Shown in pieces: positions 32,483 to 62,327 of a stretch of 64,000 nucleotides of DNA (the stretch's first letter is position 1; each line of letters begins with the position of its first letter). The stretch is from positions 744,001-808,000 of the forward strand of contig CDRNVI010000044.1 of the NCBI GenBank assembly GCA_977017575.1, read 5' to 3'. The DNA comes from Paramoeba atlantica. Taxonomy: Eukaryota > Protista > Discosea. Below the pieces are notes generated by a model that saw nothing but the letters and a program-made list of their open reading frames with translations, was not told the DNA's origin and made no database searches. The position numbers and the translations under genes are program-made.

Positions 32483-34510
32483 TCATGCATGCTCTTCTTT
32501 TGTGAAGCCTTTTCTATTGGCCGTAATGGTGAACAAGACTGGGTCATTTCGATGGCGACGCCTTTGACAATTGTCGCACATTAGAGCACGAGGCTGATGC
32601 CGCATGCCACACTCTCTACATTTCCACATGCCTCCATGTTCAATATCAGTCAACGAGCCTCGATACTCTTTTGAATAAAAGGACTTCAAGGTTCTACATC
32701 GATGACAACTGGTATTAAGAGGTAGATTCGTATACTTACAGAGCTCACAGATCCAGGGAAGTCCTGCATACTTCTGATCCGTTGCGTTGGAATGAACGTC
32801 CTCGGCCCATTCGACGCTGTCATGATCTCTTGTTTCCCTAAGAGGGAAAGCAGAAGTTATATGGCGATGAGTGGTGCGATCATATGTTTCACCCGACATT
32901 ATATCTACTAACGGAACGGTTGACCATGAGCGGGAGCTGCGATCTGAAACGTGCTCTTCTTCCTGTCTTAAGATATCTGCCATATAGTTCATCGCTTTGG
33001 AAAGGGCAATGCTGAAAGTGTCATGAAGATCTGGTATGTTTTGCATTATTATGGGCCGCCTGGGCAAAAGTAATGATCGTAACTGTTGGAGAAACTCCAC
33101 CCCCGCGCTATCGACGAGAGTGATACTAAAGCCGGATCGAAACGCTCGAGCTGTTCGCCCGCAGCGATGCAAGTACGTTTTGGCATCTGTAGGCACGTCA
33201 TAATGTACAACGTATAGTACACGCTGGTCAAAATCAATTCCCCGACTCAGCAAATCTGTCGTAAGAACTATCTGAAATTTGTCAGCGGAAAGAAGAGAGT
33301 GTTGCTTGCCGCGATCTCGGTTTGAAGTGCGGTGAGAAAATTCACAGCTAGCAAATCCAAATATTCTCAGAAGGCAATGAAGTCGATGAGACCGTCTTCT
33401 AGAAGAGCAAAAAACAATTAGCAAATCTCCAGCCGCGAGAGGAGCAAAGTGCGTTTCCTTACGTTCGATACGTGAATCAGACTCAAAGTGTTGCTGTTCA
33501 CATTTTAGTGCCAGCAAAAGTGAACACAATGTATTAATCTTGACATCCTCATCAGTTTCTATGAAATGCTCAATCAATTCGGGCGGGAGCACTAGATCCA
33601 ATGAATCACGCACATGCACGTCATCAAAGTTTTCTTTTTTTGACGTTATATTTTCCGTGGGCTCCATTGAACAGGGTGTACGCGGCTCCATTTTTTCGTA
33701 ATTGCAGCGCGCTGGCGCATCGCTTTGTTTGTGAATACCTGTTCTTAGAGTAGAAGTACATAAAGGACTATCTAACATAAAAGGATTTACCGGATAAATG
33801 TTAAATTCATACGCTAGTTGTACGTTAAACGTAGCACTACAAAAAACCTTGTGTAAAGGAGGTGCGAGCGGTAATCGATTTGTGGACTTAACAATATCGT
33901 GCAACGCCAGAGCATTTGAGAAAGATAGGAGAGCGTCAGCTTCGTCAAAGACCAAAAATCGAGTACGACGTAAGAGATCAGGGATAATTTCCAAATGCTC
34001 TTGAAGCCGTTGCGGAGTGGCGATAACAATATGAGCATGAAAATTGGCGTTTACTCGATTCCATAGTTTATGGTGATCTGGATGATTTTTAATTTTTTTA
34101 GATGACACTCCCTGGTAAGGATGCTCTGAATGCCCCGAGAGAAGCACTCCTTCGTCTTCCAGTGGGTGAAATCCGTTTATGAGGGCAACACGTATGGGTA
34201 ATGAAGCGCAAAGTTTTATAAACACATGGTAGGTCTGATTAGCCAAATCCTTAGTGGGTAGAAGTACTACAGCCTGAACGTAATATTGGAATCGTTTCCC
34301 GAGATACTTTGCTATTGGGAGTGCATAACACAATGTTTTTCCAGATCCAGTGGGAGAGGATAGGCAAATATCGCTACAATGTTCTTGTACTGCGCAGTTG
34401 TGTAAGTGGTCCAAGGTCAGGTCTTGAATCGCAAAAAGTGATTTAATCCTAAATTCTTTGCGCAAAGCAGTTTCAATGGCTTGGGGAAGCTTATCCTTCG
34501 AGGAAAACAT
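32483..34510 (-). CDS. DEAD-box RNA helicase (DDX51/Dbp6-like) with two C-terminal RanBP2-type zinc fingers
   Basis: SPTGSGKT, FDEAD, SAT, TDLLSRGIDF and YLHRCGRTARA motifs. C-terminal WICELCKYTNLPLNTSCHRC and WKCRECGMRHQPRALMCDNC. Confidence 0.9.
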   Translation of the reverse strand: MFSSKDKLPQAIETALRKEFRIKSLFAIQDLTLDHLHNCAVQEHCSDICLSSPTGSGKTLCYALPIAKYLGKRFQYYVQAVVLLPTKDLANQTYHVFIKLCASLPIRVALINGFHPLEDEGVLLSGHSEHPYQGVSSKKIKNHPDHHKLWNRVNANFHAHIVIATPQRLQEHLEIIPDLLRRTRFLVFDEADALLSFSNALALHDIVKSTNRLPLAPPLHKVFCSATFNVQLAYEFNIYPVNPFMLDSPLCTSTLRTGIHKQSDAPARCNYEKMEPRTPCSMEPTENITSKKENFDDVHVRDSLDLVLPPELIEHFIETDEDVKINTLCSLLLALKCEQQHFESDSRIERKETHFAPLAAGDLLIVFCSSRRRSHRLHCLLRIFGFASCEFSHRTSNRDRGKQHSLLSADKFQIVLTTDLLSRGIDFDQRVLYVVHYDVPTDAKTYLHRCGRTARAFRSGFSITLVDSAGVEFLQQLRSLLLPRRPIIMQNIPDLHDTFSIALSKAMNYMADILRQEEEHVSDRSSRSWSTVPLVDIMSGETYDRTTHRHITSAFPLRETRDHDSVEWAEDVHSNATDQKYAGLPWICELCKYTNLPLNTSCHRCRTLKSFYSKEYRGSLTDIEHGGMWKCRECGMRHQPRALMCDNCQRRRHRNDPVLFTITANRKGFTKEEHA

Positions 34511-34720
34511 CAAAATAAGATATTGAATGTGCAAAAATGTAGGAGTGTACCTAAATCATAATTACATGACATGTATTTCGAGATATTCGGGATCGCTTAC
34601 TTCGGTACATGACAGAACTAGACAGGTGTATTAAATGGATGTACTGTCCCCCCCTATTTACTATTGAGTGCTCAACCCCCCTATTTAGTGTTGAATTTGG
34701 GGTTTGGTGCGTATAGGTGC

Positions 34721-35397
34721 GGCGAAGCGGCGCTTAATTTTTTTCCACCATAACGTTTTTTTTCTTATGTTTGCTTGTTATTTGTGATTGTTTACTCTCC
34801 CTCTCATTGATTTTTATAAATATAACTTATAGCAAAAATTAAAATGAAAATTTATAATTATTTTTAAAAAATCAATGAGAACGCTTCCCAAGGATACTGA
34901 TTTTTACCGAAAGAGTCACCCTGCTTGATAGTTCTTCACTATCGCTACAACTCATAGGACGTTGATCGAATAAATAAAACCTGGAGAAGTCTTCTGAAAA
35001 ATCGAGAAATGTTAAAATGTGGAACTTTTTATTTTATAATTTTTAAAAATCTTTTCATTAATTAGACGAAAAGCGGATAAAATACAAAATAAAAACGTAT
35101 CTCCGGTGTTCTCTGTGGTAATCTGAGTATGCCTGAAAAAACATTATCTAAAAACAAGTCTCGCAGCTGTTACAAGGATGGTCCCATTTTTCGTGAACGG
35201 GGTTGTAGGCGCCGCGAAGCGGCTATTAATTTTTTTTCAAAAACTTTTTTTCCTTATCTTTGCTTGTTATTTGTGATTGTTTACTCTCCCTCTCATTGAT
35301 TTTTATAAATATAATTTATAGAAAAAACGAAAATTTATAAATTTATTTATATTTATTAAAATCAATGAGAAAGCTTCCCAAGGATACTGATTTTTAC
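34721..35397 (+). repeat. Two ~190-bp AT-rich direct repeats (about 34721-34907 and 35213-35397), each with an internal inverted repeat
   Basis: Shared GCGAAGCGG...TTTGCTTGTTATTTGTGATTGTTTACTCTCCCTCTCATTGATTTTTATAAAT...ATCAATGAGA...GCTTCCCAAGGATACTGATTTTTAC. Confidence 0.9.
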
Positions 35398-35549
35398 ATC
35401 GACTTTTTACATCCGTTCAGAAGTTTTAGTTCTGTTCCGGTAAGTAAACATAGAGTAAGTAATGAAAATGCGTCGAGAGAAGCGCTCTTTCTAACAACAA
35501 ATTTATCTAAAAAAATAACTACTGGTGGTAAATAAATTTACGAAGGCTT

Positions 35550-36110
35550 TTACAAAACAAAGGGGTGATCAGCACTTTCAGGAGAAATCATGTCCTCTTC
35601 ATTTTCTTCTGCTGCATCAAGAACCGGTATCACTGTAAACAGTTCGCTCGCCCGGCGAATCGCTTCAAGGATGTTTTCTGGCTTATTTAGACTTTACGGC
35701 GAAATTCCGACCTTACTCCGCGCTTGAACATTAGCATACCTCTGCCGATTATCATTAAGGTGGGCGTACGTTTTGATAATACTGTCAAGAAGCTGTGCTT
35801 TGCTATTTTTGCTCCGATCGACCGAGTGTCACCGATTAGCTTTCCCTCAGTGTATTGAGTCTGACAGTATTTCAGTAAGGCCAAGATTAGGTAGTATAGT
35901 AGTTTTGGCTTCCAGCGGTTAAAGAGACCCACATCGCAAGGCTGAAGTCTTCATGTGCACTTTTCTGGAATGTACACAATTCGCAACCATGAAAAAGTGT
36001 CTTCGTTGCGCGTGATAAGTACAGAGCGCGTGGTTTGTACAGAGCAGCAATCCAAGAGAAGAATCAAGGCAGTTTTTGTTCAGTTTGTAAAATATGTCCC
36101 CCCACAGGGC
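35550..36110 (-). pseudogene. pogo/CENP-B family (DDE_1) transposase pseudogene fragment
   Basis: Minus-strand translation TALILLLDCCSVQTT...WLRIVYIPEKCT*RLQPCDVGLFNRWKPKL matches LLLDxxxxH...F(L/I)P..(T/C)T..LQPxDxG(I/L)F..(F/W)K. It has in-frame stops and a frameshift into ...ARSKVGISP. Confidence 0.78.
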
Positions 36111-37291
36111 TTTTATACAAATGTCCCACAGCGTTCATAAAGATGTATCCCCAACCGAGTGAAAAAAATACTACAATCATGGTTTTGAAAACAATACGCC
36201 GCGAAGCGGAGCGCTTTCTTTTGAGGGGAGGAGATTTCTTACCCCCCCTATCTAGAGGGGTGACTCTGGGTGGGAGCGCCTGGAAGCGCCAAGGACCTTT
36301 GTCTTAATTTTTCTTTTTACTTTTTCTTAATCTTATTAGCTTCAGTTAGAGGATGTGGTAATCATGTTGTTGGAAATGTTTAGCCTACAAGACTTTATCA
36401 TGGTTTCGACCGCATAACATATTTTAGAATATTTTAGGGAGGTCATCCTCAGGTGTGGCGACCCCCCATTGTTTGATTTTTGTTTTCAATTTTGGACCAA
36501 CGGAGCCGTTTTTTATCTTTTTGACACATGGTAGGCTAACTATGGAGTGTTCATTGTCACTGGTGAGGCTTCCCACATATCGCTCTTCGCCGCTCTCCTC
36601 GGCGCCCCCTGGCCGCCCTCCTCGCCTGCCGTCTTGGCCTGCCCTCTTCGCCCCCACTCTTGGCCATCCTCCTGACCACTCAATTCGCCCCCCTGCCACG
36701 CCCTCTTCGCACCTTCCTTCACCCATGCGCCGCCCGCCTGACCACTCATGAGGAAAGTCCGGTCTTCTTGTATGATTGAGGGTTTCGACTCTCTCGTGTT
36801 AAAAGATCACGCTTCGCGTGGAGAACCGGTAGCGCGACCTATGCGTGAAGTAGGAAGCCAGAGCTCTTCGGAGCCAACTGGCTTGACTCACACGCACAGA
36901 CACACGCACGCTAGTGAAGCGACCTAGGAGAGCCTTGCGTCCCCGTACTCGGGCGGATCCCGAGAGCCGGAGTGGTACTTGCGGCGCTTGCATGGGGGAA
37001 TTGCGGGCGCTCTTGTTACCAACAAAAACAACAACAATTTACGACATTCATCTCTTGTTGACGCAGTGCAAAATGCCTTATTACCGGGACCGAACGATAG
37101 CCACGGTCCAATCTGCCACTTCCTTGGACAAAATTTTAGAAAATAAAAAAGTATACCCCCCATGTCCCCACATAGGGGGGTTTACGTTGCTAATCCTCAA
37201 ATTACCAAGTCCGAACTCCACAGAAGTTCACTGGAAGCGCCTAAAAGCGCCTAGAAGCGCCTGGATAGGAGTCACCCCTCAAGAGTCCTAC

Positions 37292-37388
37292 ACCCAAATC
37301 AAATTACTGTCCCCCCCCTATTTAGTGTTGAATTTTTCGGAATTTCACTCAACACTAAATAGGGGGGGGACAGTAATTTGATTTGGGT
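37292..37388. repeat. Perfect 40-bp inverted repeat with 17-nt spacer containing the transposon TIR
   Basis: ACCCAAATCAAATTACTGTCCCCCCCCTATTTAGTGTTGA (37292-37331) is the exact reverse complement of 37349-37388. Confidence 0.95.
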
Positions 37389-38067
37389 ATAGGACAAAGA
37401 TAAATCTAACACATAACTCATGTATATGCACAAATCCAACACGAAACTTAACTTTGCGCAAGAATAACACGTGATTTAATGAAGATTTGGTGGTAGAGTT
37501 TAGGGTGAACTTAATACGGAAGCTTTTTGAAGTCTAGAAACCACGCTCCGACCAGATCGCTGGATAAAGCTAAAGAACGGCTCGGAGTTTACTCGAGTCA
37601 ACATCTCCGCGGAAGAAATACTTTCTCCTAGTCCTATCATGAGCGGAGGATTATCCGATTATGTATCTTAGATACAGGATTATGGACATCTGTACCAGGG
37701 ACAGAGATTTGCGATCTAGGTACTACCTAGAAATATTTTTTTGCCGAAATATCATAAACTAATAATTTTTTGTTAAAACAAATCTCATTTCTATGGAGCC
37801 AAAGACAGCGCATTCTGACTAGTTATTCGTGGTTCTCTTGTCAGAGTCACGTATTATGCAAAACAAATCAGTCAAGAAGCTCGCATGACGCTCTCAAGAC
37901 GTTTGTCCCAAAAATCACGAACGGGGTTGTACATGTAGCAGTAATTAGAAGAGTATCATTAGTAACGCGTAGTAGCTAAAGGTTCCGCTTGATCCCTCGA
38001 GACCAGTCCTCAACCTTCATTTATCGAAAATTGTTTTGGTGAATTTTACCATCCGCTCTATTTTTTT

Positions 38068-47047: not shown

Positions 47048-47362
47048 ATAAAAAAGAAAAGAAAGTATTTGCTCTCAGAAGATGTGTAGCGCTGCTAGAG
47101 TATCAGAGACTTCTTTTAATCGTCAGGGAGATAGAATTTCACTAATTAGTGACGCTTTGAAAAATACTGTCACCCCCCCCTTTAAACTTCCGCCGGTTTC
47201 GGTACTTTTGGAAGTATAAACGGGGGGTCTCACTTTCGGAAGTATAAAGGGGGGGGGTCTGATTTTTTGAAAAATCCGCGAAACGAATATTTTTGAAAAA
47301 GGGGCAAAAAAAATGCGCCGCTTAGCGGCGCTCGTTTCCTATTATTCTAGCTAAAAATCAAT

Positions 47363-47859
47363 GTTTTGATGTTCATACGCTCGTTGGCGCAGAGATACAG
47401 CCCTTGATGCGACAGCCGATATCATCGGCACAATCCGTAATGACGGATGTCGCACCAAGGGGATTAGCACGGACTATGTCGGTAGAGGGGGTCCAGGTAA
47501 CTCGCCCTCTCTTTACGCAGCCGGAGGGGCGCACTGCAACCGACCGCTGCCTCGCGATAAGACGAGGCAGAGCCACGCCCAGTGGTCCTCAAGGGAGGCC
47601 ACCATGGCGCATGGCTCCCCGGGAAGGAAAGGGCGCGAAGGGAAGAAAGCCGGGGAGGGAAGAAAACTCACTCAAAGAGTGAGCCGGGGAGGGGTGATGG
47701 GGTGGAAGCACGTCCGCTACTTCGCCGAGAAAGAGGGACAGTTTCGGCCTTAGTGCCGGCCGGCAACGGGCATATAACAGTAAGACTATGCCCGTTGCCG
47801 GGGAAAGAAAAGATGAACTAAAGGAAAATGTACCAACAAGGTACAGAAACTGTATCTTT
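47363..47859 (-). mobile_element. SL-headed structured element, subfamily A, copy 2 (497 bp)
   Basis: Reverse complement of 7004-7577 with scattered substitutions and one fewer 76-bp module. The SL part is 47834-47859. Confidence 0.75.
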
Positions 47860-48260
47860 ATCCAATCTCCAAACATGCAGGGCATAATGTTGGCTTCCGT
47901 GTTCCTCTTGCACACAATCAACATACGCTGTTTATTACGCTGTAGTGAATACGTGTCGGGACGATCTACCATTAGAAGCTTCATGGGACAGTCTTTGAAA
48001 CGAGGTACATTCGCCTTTGCTGCAGCAGGCGCATGTCCGCGCTAGCTGTCATCCCGCCCAGTTCGCTAAGGAGGAGTTCGTTAATTTTTTCGCATCTCGA
48101 CATGTTTGTTCTTGTGCAAACCCCATCGCGCTTGCAACTACGATAGATTTACTTTTTTCTGGAAAAATCCGACACCATTTTTCCGGATGGAGCGGATGGT
48201 TCGAGATCAGACGCCGTACTTCTCGCTTATTTGTGGAGCACTTCTACTCGAATGAGACAC
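47860..48260 (-). pseudogene. Decayed N-terminal (CENP-B/Tc5 HTH) part of a pogo transposase
   Basis: Minus-strand frames give APQISEKYGV*SRTIRSIRKN (HTH) and a partly deleted ASNG..DR, resembling F.AS.GWL.RF. Confidence 0.5.
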
Positions 48261-48653
48261 ATTCAACTTCTCCTACATTGTTGGGTTCTTTCCTCCCTGG
48301 GGTAAACCGACGGACACAGGTAATGTCGCAGGCTCCGCGCTTGAAACCACTATTTCGTTGGGAGGCCGAACGCGATGAAGAGGGGGATAAAGCTTAACCC
48401 ACTGCGAGTATTGACATGGGAAAAAATACGGCAAATAATTTAAATGTATATCTAGCAATATGTCTACACACACCTCTAACGTTTAATATAAAAAAAAGTA
48501 GAAAATTGTTATTAAAAAAAACTGCGCCGCGAAGCGGCGCAGTTTTTTTGGGACCGGAAGTATAAAGGGAGGGGGCTGATTTTTCATCTGGATGAAAACG
48601 GAAGTATAAAGGGGGGGTTGACCCCCCTGAAGTATAAAGGGGGGGGGTGACAA

Positions 48654-60761: not shown

Positions 60762-62327
60762 TTAATTTTGTGATTGTTTTTTCCGAGTCCCTAACCATCC
60801 TACGACGCTTTGCGCAATGCTAGACGCAGCAGTTTGTTGCTTTTGTTCTTGCATGGCATGTTCACCGTACGTATCCTTACGGTGTCGTTGATGCTGAAAT
60901 TGTTTCTTGAACAAAAGCCGTCGAGCGTCTTCTGTTTCCATGGATGTCTCTAAATTTTGCTTTATGGAAGGTCTTGGGGCATCTTCCAAGAGATGCTTCA
61001 ACGCGAACTCGGGGTCGTTCGCTTCGGAGCACAGCACGTGTGCTGCCAGTGAGAAGCTGTCTCGAATAAATTTGAGTCGCGTTGCATCAACAACTCGCGC
61101 AATGTTCTCTGAACCGTACGGATCTTTCATTGCAAATGAGTAATACGGAGGCTTTCCGTTTTCCCCTTCGAGTTCCGTGGTCCAATGAAGAGAAGATTTA
61201 GACATATCCTTCGTCGTGCAGCACACCACACTGTTATCGTAATCAAAACTGTGAGCAAAGTAGCAAATAAAGTGCACAAACAGGTATCCTACATCAGTTG
61301 GATCAGGGCTGTCTGCGCGCAACGACACGTATTCCGGATCCTTCGGTAGCAGCTGTGGTTCCGTCATTAACTCTTCTGGATTCAGTGGTGCTATTCTGTC
61401 ACACTGCACCAAAAAGTGGGCTAGCATGCTAGTGTACGCATAGGACGCCAAATACCCATCCAATGAGTTTATCGTCCTGCAACCTTTTCCCCATTTCTTC
61501 AGCGCTAACAATAGATGTCTGGCTCCCGGATAGGCCATCAACGCGCGACGCATCAAAAATGTATTTTGCAATCCCATAGAGCCGAAACACAGGTCAAAGG
61601 GGTAGCGATACAGCTCGGGGGCGTTTCTCGCATCCAGCGGCGCACGCACTGGAATCTCCACATCCCCGTGTCTGCGAATACTCGTCATCGCGTGCACAGC
61701 GTCCTCGGTGTTGTGAAACTGTACTGCCACACACTGGTGGTCCGCTCGCCACGTTTGTCGCAGCCGGACACCGTAACGAGATTCTAACCGAGACCAGAAT
61801 GAGTCACGTTCCTCGGAGCTTAGCGGGCGGGCGAAGGGAAACGACACTGTCGCACTCTCCGGTGTCACGGGAGTCCCGGGGAGCCACACGGAAGTGCGAT
61901 CACAGCGCACCACGGGAACTTTTGCTCTGGGAATCGCCATCGAGCGCAGTCCCAGCCGTCGCATCTCCTTGGACACACGCTGTGCAATCGCCGCCGCCTC
62001 CTCATGTCGAGGCTCGACGTCGCCGAGCCCGACAAAGTCTAAATCCCCGCTGACTTCGAAGAATCCCAGGGAGACGAGACCCCCAAAGAACAGGACATCA
62101 AGCTCGTACCCCATGCTGCGGAGTATTTGCTCCAGCTGTCGTCGTGCAATGAGACACTCCGCGTAGGTGCCCTCCCCTGCGTCGCATACTTTGGACTCAT
62201 TCAGAATAGCCGTCCCGAGCGCTTTGTAGTACGGACTCCCGCGATCGTGAAGGGTGGGAATTTTCTGTTTTAAGGTAGATTCCCATGGCAGAGCGGAGTG
62301 GCGTAAAAGTCGAAAGCAGCGCCTCAT
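60762..62327 (-). CDS. KPAP1: Kinetoplast (mitochondrial) poly(A) polymerase
   Basis: FGGLVSLGFFEVSGDLDF nucleotidyltransferase motif, KVPVV, PFDLCF, LKKWG, LASYAYT and FAMKDPYG; 521 aa, colinear with trypanosomatid KPAP1 as I recall it. Confidence 0.85.
   Translation of the reverse strand: MRRCFRLLRHSALPWESTLKQKIPTLHDRGSPYYKALGTAILNESKVCDAGEGTYAECLIARRQLEQILRSMGYELDVLFFGGLVSLGFFEVSGDLDFVGLGDVEPRHEEAAAIAQRVSKEMRRLGLRSMAIPRAKVPVVRCDRTSVWLPGTPVTPESATVSFPFARPLSSEERDSFWSRLESRYGVRLRQTWRADHQCVAVQFHNTEDAVHAMTSIRRHGDVEIPVRAPLDARNAPELYRYPFDLCFGSMGLQNTFLMRRALMAYPGARHLLLALKKWGKGCRTINSLDGYLASYAYTSMLAHFLVQCDRIAPLNPEELMTEPQLLPKDPEYVSLRADSPDPTDVGYLFVHFICYFAHSFDYDNSVVCCTTKDMSKSSLHWTTELEGENGKPPYYSFAMKDPYGSENIARVVDATRLKFIRDSFSLAAHVLCSEANDPEFALKHLLEDAPRPSIKQNLETSMETEDARRLLFKKQFQHQRHRKDTYGEHAMQEQKQQTAASSIAQSVVGWLGTRKKQSQN

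Follow-up and report, generated by a model that had tools for sequence, protein, structure and literature searches.

Does the DNA between positions 34642 and 37375 of the stretch analysed here (64,000 nucleotides of the Paramoeba atlantica assembly, contig CDRNVI010000044.1; hereafter the window, to which all coordinates refer) record one past invasion of a kinetoplastid genome by a class II transposon, or does it belong to something older and more numerous? A sequence-only reading had taken it for a single pogo-type relic (IS630-Tc1-mariner, DDE_1) with TA-flanked terminal inverted repeats (TIRs), possibly acquired from an amoebozoan host. The TIRs, the flanking TA dinucleotides, and a minus-strand DDE string are all there; the idea of a single relic of one invasion gives way to a multi-copy family in a genome that holds at least 126 DDE_1 matches, intact open reading frames (ORFs) among them. 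With a probability of about 0.85, we read 34642-37375 as an old copy, immobile and rearranged, of a non-autonomous pogo-type family 1.0-1.2 kb long in a kinetoplastid-type nuclear genome.

The element runs from TA to TA and carries inverted repeats of 27 bp at both ends, which differ at 2 positions. The TIR motif (CTGT, seven or eight C, TATTTA) occurs at 34644 on the plus strand, again at 37307 on the plus strand, and ending at 37373 on the minus strand; the left end reads TA, CTGT, seven C, TATTTAC on the plus strand (34642-34670). This pattern occurs 34 times in the 45.7-Mb assembly, its reversed control not once, and the matches are mostly facing pairs separated by 1.0-1.2 kb. TA is found on both sides of the window copy and of 6 other copies of the family. 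From left to right, the features are as follows.

34642-34643: left TA target-site duplication; other copies are likewise TA-flanked, and the flanks differ each time.
34644-34670, plus strand: left TIR of 27 bp (CTGT, C-run, TATTTA).
34676-34698, plus strand: inner direct repeat of the TIR core, three copies 78-100% identical; a candidate second transposase-binding site.
34714-34907: sub-terminal segment, duplication copy 1, matched by positions 1306-1498 of the family copy L024.
34908-35205: foreign filler between the duplicated segments, made of pieces of two other dispersed repeats.
35206-35397: sub-terminal segment, duplication copy 2, collinear with the rest of the canonical element.
35550-36137, minus strand: broken transposase remnant, the C-terminal ~190 residues with the second D, the third D, and the tail.
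36242-36254, plus strand: inner arm of the right-end palindrome, truncated by the nested insertion; L024 2341-2354 matches here and at 37312-37325.
36255-37280: nested, non-coding TIR element of ~1.03 kb whose TIR starts GAGGGGTGACTC; Harbinger-like.
37281-37310: repair junction, in which AAGA filler is followed by the right flank in inverted copy (37285-37304), then TA and CTGT, the tip of the TIR.
37311-37331, plus strand: complete inner arm of the right-end palindrome, a canonical part of the family.
37347-37373, minus strand: right TIR, the reverse complement of the left motif.
37374-37375: right TA target-site duplication.

Rfam and tRNA scans of the window gave no match. A short GC palindrome of the GCGCCGC-GAAG-CGGCGC type, with a T-run after it, is repeated at 34716-34745, 35208-35240, 36197-36221, 47307-47340, and 48516-48549; it sits sub-terminally both in the relic and in the window's other element with C-run TIRs.

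A search of the genome with window 35400-36300 as DNA query reveals two kinds of match: i) contigs C70 and C237 are 99.7% identical to the window across the 3.9 kb compared, flanks included (12 differences over ~3.9 kb), and we take them for the window locus on the other haplotype, or on redundant contigs; and ii) at least seven other loci are 84-95% identical to the query. Canonical copies on C11, C24, C12, C2, C54 (twice), C99, and C30/C3 align to 34642-34907, 35206-36255, and 37312-37376, and each is TA-flanked with unrelated flanks; because these other loci align to just three window segments, the canonical element is judged to be only ~1.0-1.2 kb long. Within a 790-bp core, identity is 88-95% between loci and 98.2-99.9% between pairs that share flanks. 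The contig sets that share flanks are C44/C70/C237, C11/C24, C3/C30, and C2/C12 (98.2-99.9% identical). Many loci occur twice in this way, as though the assembly contained either both haplotypes or redundant contigs, and raw copy counts are inflated. An ends-only version of 98 bp, with left- and right-type TIRs facing each other, lies at G000:C185:9767-9864 and amounts to a minimal miniature inverted-repeat transposable element (MITE).

Every copy of the family begins about 25-30 residues before the second catalytic D, with everything upstream gone; the open frames run directly into the TIR; and every copy carries stops or frameshifts, at positions that differ from copy to copy. At least 7 independent loci are bounded by TIRs and target-site duplications, and none of them holds a complete transposase gene. 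Because the N-terminal half is lacking in all copies and the frames read into the TIR, we interpret the family as an internally deleted, non-autonomous derivative. The nearest fuller relatives in the genome share only 50-60% protein identity and are themselves broken, and no master above ~60% protein identity was found among the best-scoring genome-search candidates that were read; the family has therefore most likely died out. Variable sites in the remnant are spread evenly over the three codon positions (29/25/26, p 0.85), and the copies therefore decay neutrally. In our reading, internal deletion of an autonomous element founded the family, removing the DNA-binding domain and the first D and leaving the C-terminal half of the transposase gene; as expected for elements of this class, a related transposase recognising the 27-bp TIRs would then have moved copies to TA sites in trans, by cut and paste; and the window copy, once inserted, decayed neutrally.

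What remains of the transposase can be followed through the minus-strand frames. The region of the second D reads ALILLLDCCSVQ, with the motif LLLD and the second D codon at 36050-36052; WLRIVYIPEKCT follows downstream and ends at an in-frame TGA (35951-53); the region of the third D reads RLQPCDVGLFNRWK (LQPCDVGLF), with its D codon at 35933-35935; after a frameshift come AQLLDSIIKTYAHLN...SKVGISP and a TAA at 35694-96; and the tail reads SLNKPENILEAIRRA up to the terminal TAA at 35550-52. Frameshifts lie near 36070 and at 35800-35830. The second and third D are 38 codons apart (DD38D); the first D is deleted throughout the family, and the DNA-binding domain is deleted in the window copy and in the family.

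Profile searches register this remnant faintly. Pfam found no match in ten stop-free pieces from the window and no significant family in five longer open frames of sister copies, and a genome-wide DDE_1 scan that read through stops did not include the window copy among its candidates. Read through its stop, the allelic twin (C70/C237) matches DDE_1 at 23.6 bits (E 8e-4; cut-off 22), and sister copies treated likewise score 22.9-24.9 bits. With an in-house hidden Markov model (HMM) built from the 14 strongest resident pogo ORFs and run on six-frame translations with X at stops, the window beats 200 shuffled controls yet reaches only E 1.2, and because of this weak score we place the relic family far from the best-scoring resident pogo families. 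A tblastn search of the region with the 20 strongest resident pogo ORFs gave nothing below E 0.05 inside the remnant, and one match of E 1e-6 in the flank at ~37.54-37.59 kb.

Pairwise homology, which we regard as the decisive evidence for a transposase remnant, speaks far more clearly. L082, a fuller relative on contig C7 with NIDETG, LLLD, and QPCD in one 217-aa frame, matches the window by tblastn at 36076-35927 (E 3.4e-16) and again in the tail (E 2.6e-9); P0002, an Apiculatamorpha protein, matches 36079-35798 (E 3.8e-18, 43% identity over 100 residues); P0011, which itself matches DDE_1 at 44.7 bits, reaches E 1e-6; and sister-copy ORFs match at 85% identity (E 4e-36). The DDE_1 string that the sequence-only reading had called unambiguous is thus borne out by homology to L082 and P0002, while Pfam alone is too weak to carry it.

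Does this relic stand by itself in its genome? The at least 126 DDE_1 matches include intact ORFs of 460-530 aa, and some resident pogo copies are 96-99.96% identical between loci. Intact resident elements measure 2.1-2.3 kb and have TIRs composed of TA, CCGTTA, 7-10 C, and TTACTTA; these TIRs are built like those of the relic, whose ends are thereby tied to the resident population. Given the number of DDE_1 matches, the young intact elements among them, and the shared TIR theme, we see the relic as an old layer of that population, not as a solitary element. Two adjacent intact pogo elements (L004/L005, G000:C14:199593-205239), with a 499-aa ORF carrying CENP-B_N and DDE_1, are 99.96% identical over 2,255 bp; copies of the L004 type on C10 and C11 are 96-98.5% identical, and these form a much younger layer than the relic family.

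Relatives outside the genome were sought by a HMMER scan of the L082 ORF against 1.84 billion representatives, which returned 426 hits. Among hits with a name, the highest score belongs to transcripts of the free-living prokinetoplastid Apiculatamorpha spiralis PhF-6 (200 bits, 47% identity). Liverwort DDE-1 proteins come next, with about 80 bits and 34-36% identity; no amoebozoan occurs among the named hits, and most hits are metagenome proteins without a species name. The unannotated A. spiralis transcripts (P0002/P0155, EukProt EP00759) encode a pogo-like transposase of 504 aa, full-length and with all three catalytic D. The CCSVH and LQPCDVGLFNR motifs are common to them and the relic lineage, to which they are 43% (remnant) and 47% (L082) identical; they are known from transcriptome contigs alone, whereas the relic has TIRs and a TA duplication. 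As a caveat, Apiculatamorpha was fed bodonid prey, also a kinetoplastid, and the prey could be the source of the transcripts; the paper describing Apiculatamorpha does not mention transposons. An ENA contig of 82 kb (L083, ERZ24900291:ctg3939l, 72022-82066) holds a ~5-kb tandem unit with a transposase-like ORF; it shares a 29-nt spliced-leader-like string with window 47834-47862, and its source is therefore probably the same organism or a sister one. The pattern of hits, together with the diverged resident families, fits a lineage resident in kinetoplastids and prokinetoplastids.

These data bear on the possibility that the element is the lone trace of a recent horizontal entry, for instance from an amoebozoan host. 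Pogo elements have moved horizontally in other lineages, which lends the idea some plausibility, as does the lack of class II elements in trypanosomatids (PMC12278014). Many diverged pogo families sharing one TIR theme, with copies ranging from 88% to 99.96% identity, point instead to long residence and diversification in place; A. spiralis scores 200 bits where the liverwort hits score about 80; and amoebozoans are not seen among the named hits, most hits being nameless metagenome proteins. We consider a recent entry unlikely. Transfer from the amoeba host in particular, as the sequence-only reading had suggested, is unsupported, the nearest named relative being a free-living prokinetoplastid; older transfers may have taken place.

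Does the old resident family belong to pogo, or to another branch of IS630-Tc1-mariner (Tc1, mariner, or IS630/DDE_3)? At E 1e-11 to 1e-14, and at overlapping coordinates, ORFs of the family match other ORFs of the genome that pass DDE_1 (32-38 bits). L082 matches L004 (DDE_1 1.6e-16, plus CENP-B_N) at E 3e-5 across the whole catalytic core, with the DETG, LLxD..H, and P..CTS.xQ..DV motifs in register. The external relatives P0004 and P0011-P0016 score 27-56 bits for DDE_1, always above DDE_3; the third catalytic residue is D, in LQPCDVG..F...K; and the first-D motif of the relatives reads NIDETG in L082 and NADETA in P0002. Pfam detected no CENP-B_N, HTH_Tnp_Tc5, or HTH_psq DNA-binding domain in the L082 pieces or P0002; the L004 family has CENP-B_N at 30.5 bits. 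DDE_3 scored 12-27.8 bits in all tested proteins, under its cut-off of 28.6. From these comparisons the lineage looks like a diverged branch of DDE_1/pogo.

The relic agrees with the pogo superfamily (pogo, Tigger, Fot, pogoR, and Lemi, among others; Gao et al. 2020, PMC7386202) in its TA duplication; in short TIRs like those of type 1 (<=40 bp); in a DDE_1-type core with D as third residue and a DD38D spacing within the range DD29-59D (PMC7386202); and in forming non-autonomous deletion derivatives, which are common among pogo elements. It differs in that only the C-terminal half is kept and the DNA-binding domain is unassignable; in the great divergence of its lineage from the Pfam DDE_1 model (closest members 21-27 bits); in the unusual run of 7-9 C in its TIRs; and in its host, a kinetoplastid-type protist, a group for which our literature search gave no pogo report. 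In favour of another branch, the L082 ORF and P0001 match DDE_3 at 21-23 bits, and TA duplications are common to Tc1/mariner and pogo; yet DDE_3 stays below 28.6 bits in every tested protein, the more distant relatives score DDE_1 (31-56 bits) above DDE_3, the third residue is D in LQPxDVG..F...K at a spacing of 38, inside the pogo range (PMC7386202), and the first-D motif is N(I/A)DET. Another branch is thus distinctly improbable.

The host itself, which the sequence-only reading had named as kinetoplastid, is recognisable from the window. All 22 window ORFs of at least 250 aa lie uninterrupted on the minus strand, as ordinary eukaryotic genes. One of them, a PAP_assoc protein of the Cid1 family (60765-62327, minus strand), matches T. 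brucei RET2 at E 6.5e-28, RET1 at E 1.7e-25, and Cid1 at 2.3e-10, and RET2 (MP57) and RET1 are its best solved relatives over nearly its full length; this is the gene earlier labelled as of the 'KPAP1' type, and it is a useful marker of host type. The transposable element (TE) island holds spliced-leader-derived heads with the core ACAGTTTCTGTAC, which falls inside a prokinetoplastid string quoted in PMC7859406. Because it combines a same-strand array of intronless ORFs, a RET2/RET1-like terminal uridylyltransferase (TUTase), and the spliced-leader core, we assign the contig to a kinetoplastid-type genome.

Could the TE island, or the whole element, instead be a misassembled segment of amoeba host or contaminant DNA joined to kinetoplastid sequence? 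GC content does dip to 0.37 at 34-36 kb. Against this, the junctions across 33899-37796 recur at 99.7% in C70 and C237; same-strand ORFs flank the element and run inside the island; the island has spliced-leader-derived sequence; the family lies beside long intronless ORFs on at least 10 other contigs; and the nearest named relative of the transposase is kinetoplastid. Misassembly is very improbable, and the host-contig chimerism against which the sequence-only reading had warned left no apparent sign, because the element-to-gene junctions recur in C44, C70, and C237.

A domesticated gene, or one still coding for a transposase-derived protein, is a scarcely credible reading of the remnant: sister copies do keep open frames of 123-136 aa, and pogo transposases are often domesticated (PMC7386202), but all copies have stops or frameshifts in differing places, substitutions are even across codon positions, neither the first D nor the DNA-binding domain escaped deletion, and the frames read through the TIR.

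Several observations nonetheless weigh against reading the element as a decayed copy of a non-autonomous pogo-type family: i) Pfam fails to call the window copy itself; ii) the N-terminal half is gone, so that the type of DNA-binding domain that helps to define pogo is unreadable, and it is undetected in L082 and P0002 as well; iii) L082 scores slightly higher for DDE_3 (23.1 bits) than for DDE_1 (21.6-22.4 bits), both near or below the cut-offs; iv) the failure to find a master is weak evidence of extinction, since the search scored the best candidates only; and v) the left 200 bp are closest to a copy of another subfamily than the core is (95% identical to L029, 87% to L024), and the two outer TIRs may come from two elements joined by rearrangement, a single insertion being unprovable because TA duplications are uninformative.

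In the window copy, a sub-terminal segment of 193 bp is present twice (34714-34907 and 35206-35397, ~87% alike), both versions being matched by a single stretch of L024 (1306-1498), and the 298 bp between them consist of fragments of two other dispersed repeats. One of these repeats, of ~104 bp at 35104-35207, has at least 25 copies in the genome at 82-93% identity.

The canonical right end is a 64-bp palindrome in which a 17-nt spacer separates an inner arm from the terminal TIR. In the window, a nested element of 1,026 bp (36255-37280) interrupts that arm 13 nt in (36242-36254). The TIRs of this element begin GAGGGGTGACTC, its interior has GAAGCGCC repeats, and at least 10 other copies of it lie in the genome at 84-92% identity; Pfam found no match in its open frames. 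Its flanks elsewhere read TTA/TTA at L050, TAA on the right at L045, TAA/CAA at L048, and TTA on the left at L046, the target duplication being read in only 3-4 copies. The nested element recalls PIF/Harbinger MITEs in being TIR-bounded, non-coding, ~1 kb long, and multi-copy, with TTA/TAA where both ends are readable; it differs in that the right duplication at this locus was lost to repair. We would call it a Harbinger-like MITE.

At the window locus the expected right-hand duplication of the nested element is missing, and in its place stand AAGA, 20 nt of inverted right flank (37285-37304), TA, CTGT, and a complete inner arm. The junction thereby forms a palindrome (37281-37395 region) with 47-nt arms, 98% complementary, which reach past the transposon end into unique flank; its predicted fold has -52 kcal/mol and a z of -16. 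A genome search found the 20-nt flank string at this locus and its twins only. We had entertained 37307-37373 as a separate mini-element of 67 bp inserted into a pre-existing palindrome, and rejected it: the flank string is unique in the genome and the inner arm is canonical. All three contigs of the locus (C44, C70, and C237) carry the repair junction, which is therefore older than the divergence of the haplotypes and no artefact of assembly. The 1-kb Harbinger-like MITE entered the inner arm of the right-end palindrome of the decaying copy. On the simplest account, a break at the MITE junction would then have allowed the 3′ strand to fold back on the pre-existing palindrome; self-templated synthesis of ~26-37 nt would have duplicated the TIR tip, together with 20 nt of unique flank, as an inverted copy, and end joining would have followed.

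Cut-and-paste elements are nearly absent from published kinetoplastid mobilomes, a point that the sequence-only reading had made for trypanosomatids: the literature searched reports only Merlin (PMC8101967, PMC12278014). Lopes et al. 2021 (PMC8101967) presented Merlin, from Bodo and Perkinsela, as the first kinetoplastid DNA transposon, and a 2025 mobilome survey of 57 trypanosomatids found no class II element and cites only Merlin (PMC12278014). For "Excavata", Gao et al. 2020 (PMC7386202) record pogo from one species only, which they do not name, and our literature search combining pogo or mariner with kinetoplastid terms found no report; pogo in kinetoplastids thus appears undescribed. Merlin (PMC8101967) and the relic family have in common that they are class II elements of non-trypanosomatid kinetoplastids. 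Merlin belongs to another superfamily (DDE_Tnp_IS1595) and makes 8-9 bp duplications, whereas the relic is pogo-type with TA, and the Perkinsela Merlin copies are without TIRs or duplications, whereas the TIRs, TA duplication, and many copies of the relic family are plain.

Three things are new here: an old non-autonomous family is defined, a nested insertion with a snap-back junction is dissected, and a prokinetoplastid homologue is identified. The locus itself is ordinary dead DNA, useful as a marker of TE history, as a check on haplotypes and assembly, and as a clean example of nested insertion and fold-back; the relic family supplies a dated older layer for comparison with the young intact copies at other places in the genome. 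We think the chances about even that pogo elements are old, vertically kept, and still partly active in early-branching kinetoplastids and prokinetoplastids and were lost toward the trypanosomatids, with the relic family as one extinct layer and the snap-back junction as a natural footprint of templated, microhomology-type end joining. Kinetoplastid mobilomes have been described as retroelements only; a multi-copy pogo family and a prokinetoplastid homologue extend class II elements beyond Merlin, and the richness of pogo at the level of the genome is noteworthy for kinetoplastid biology.

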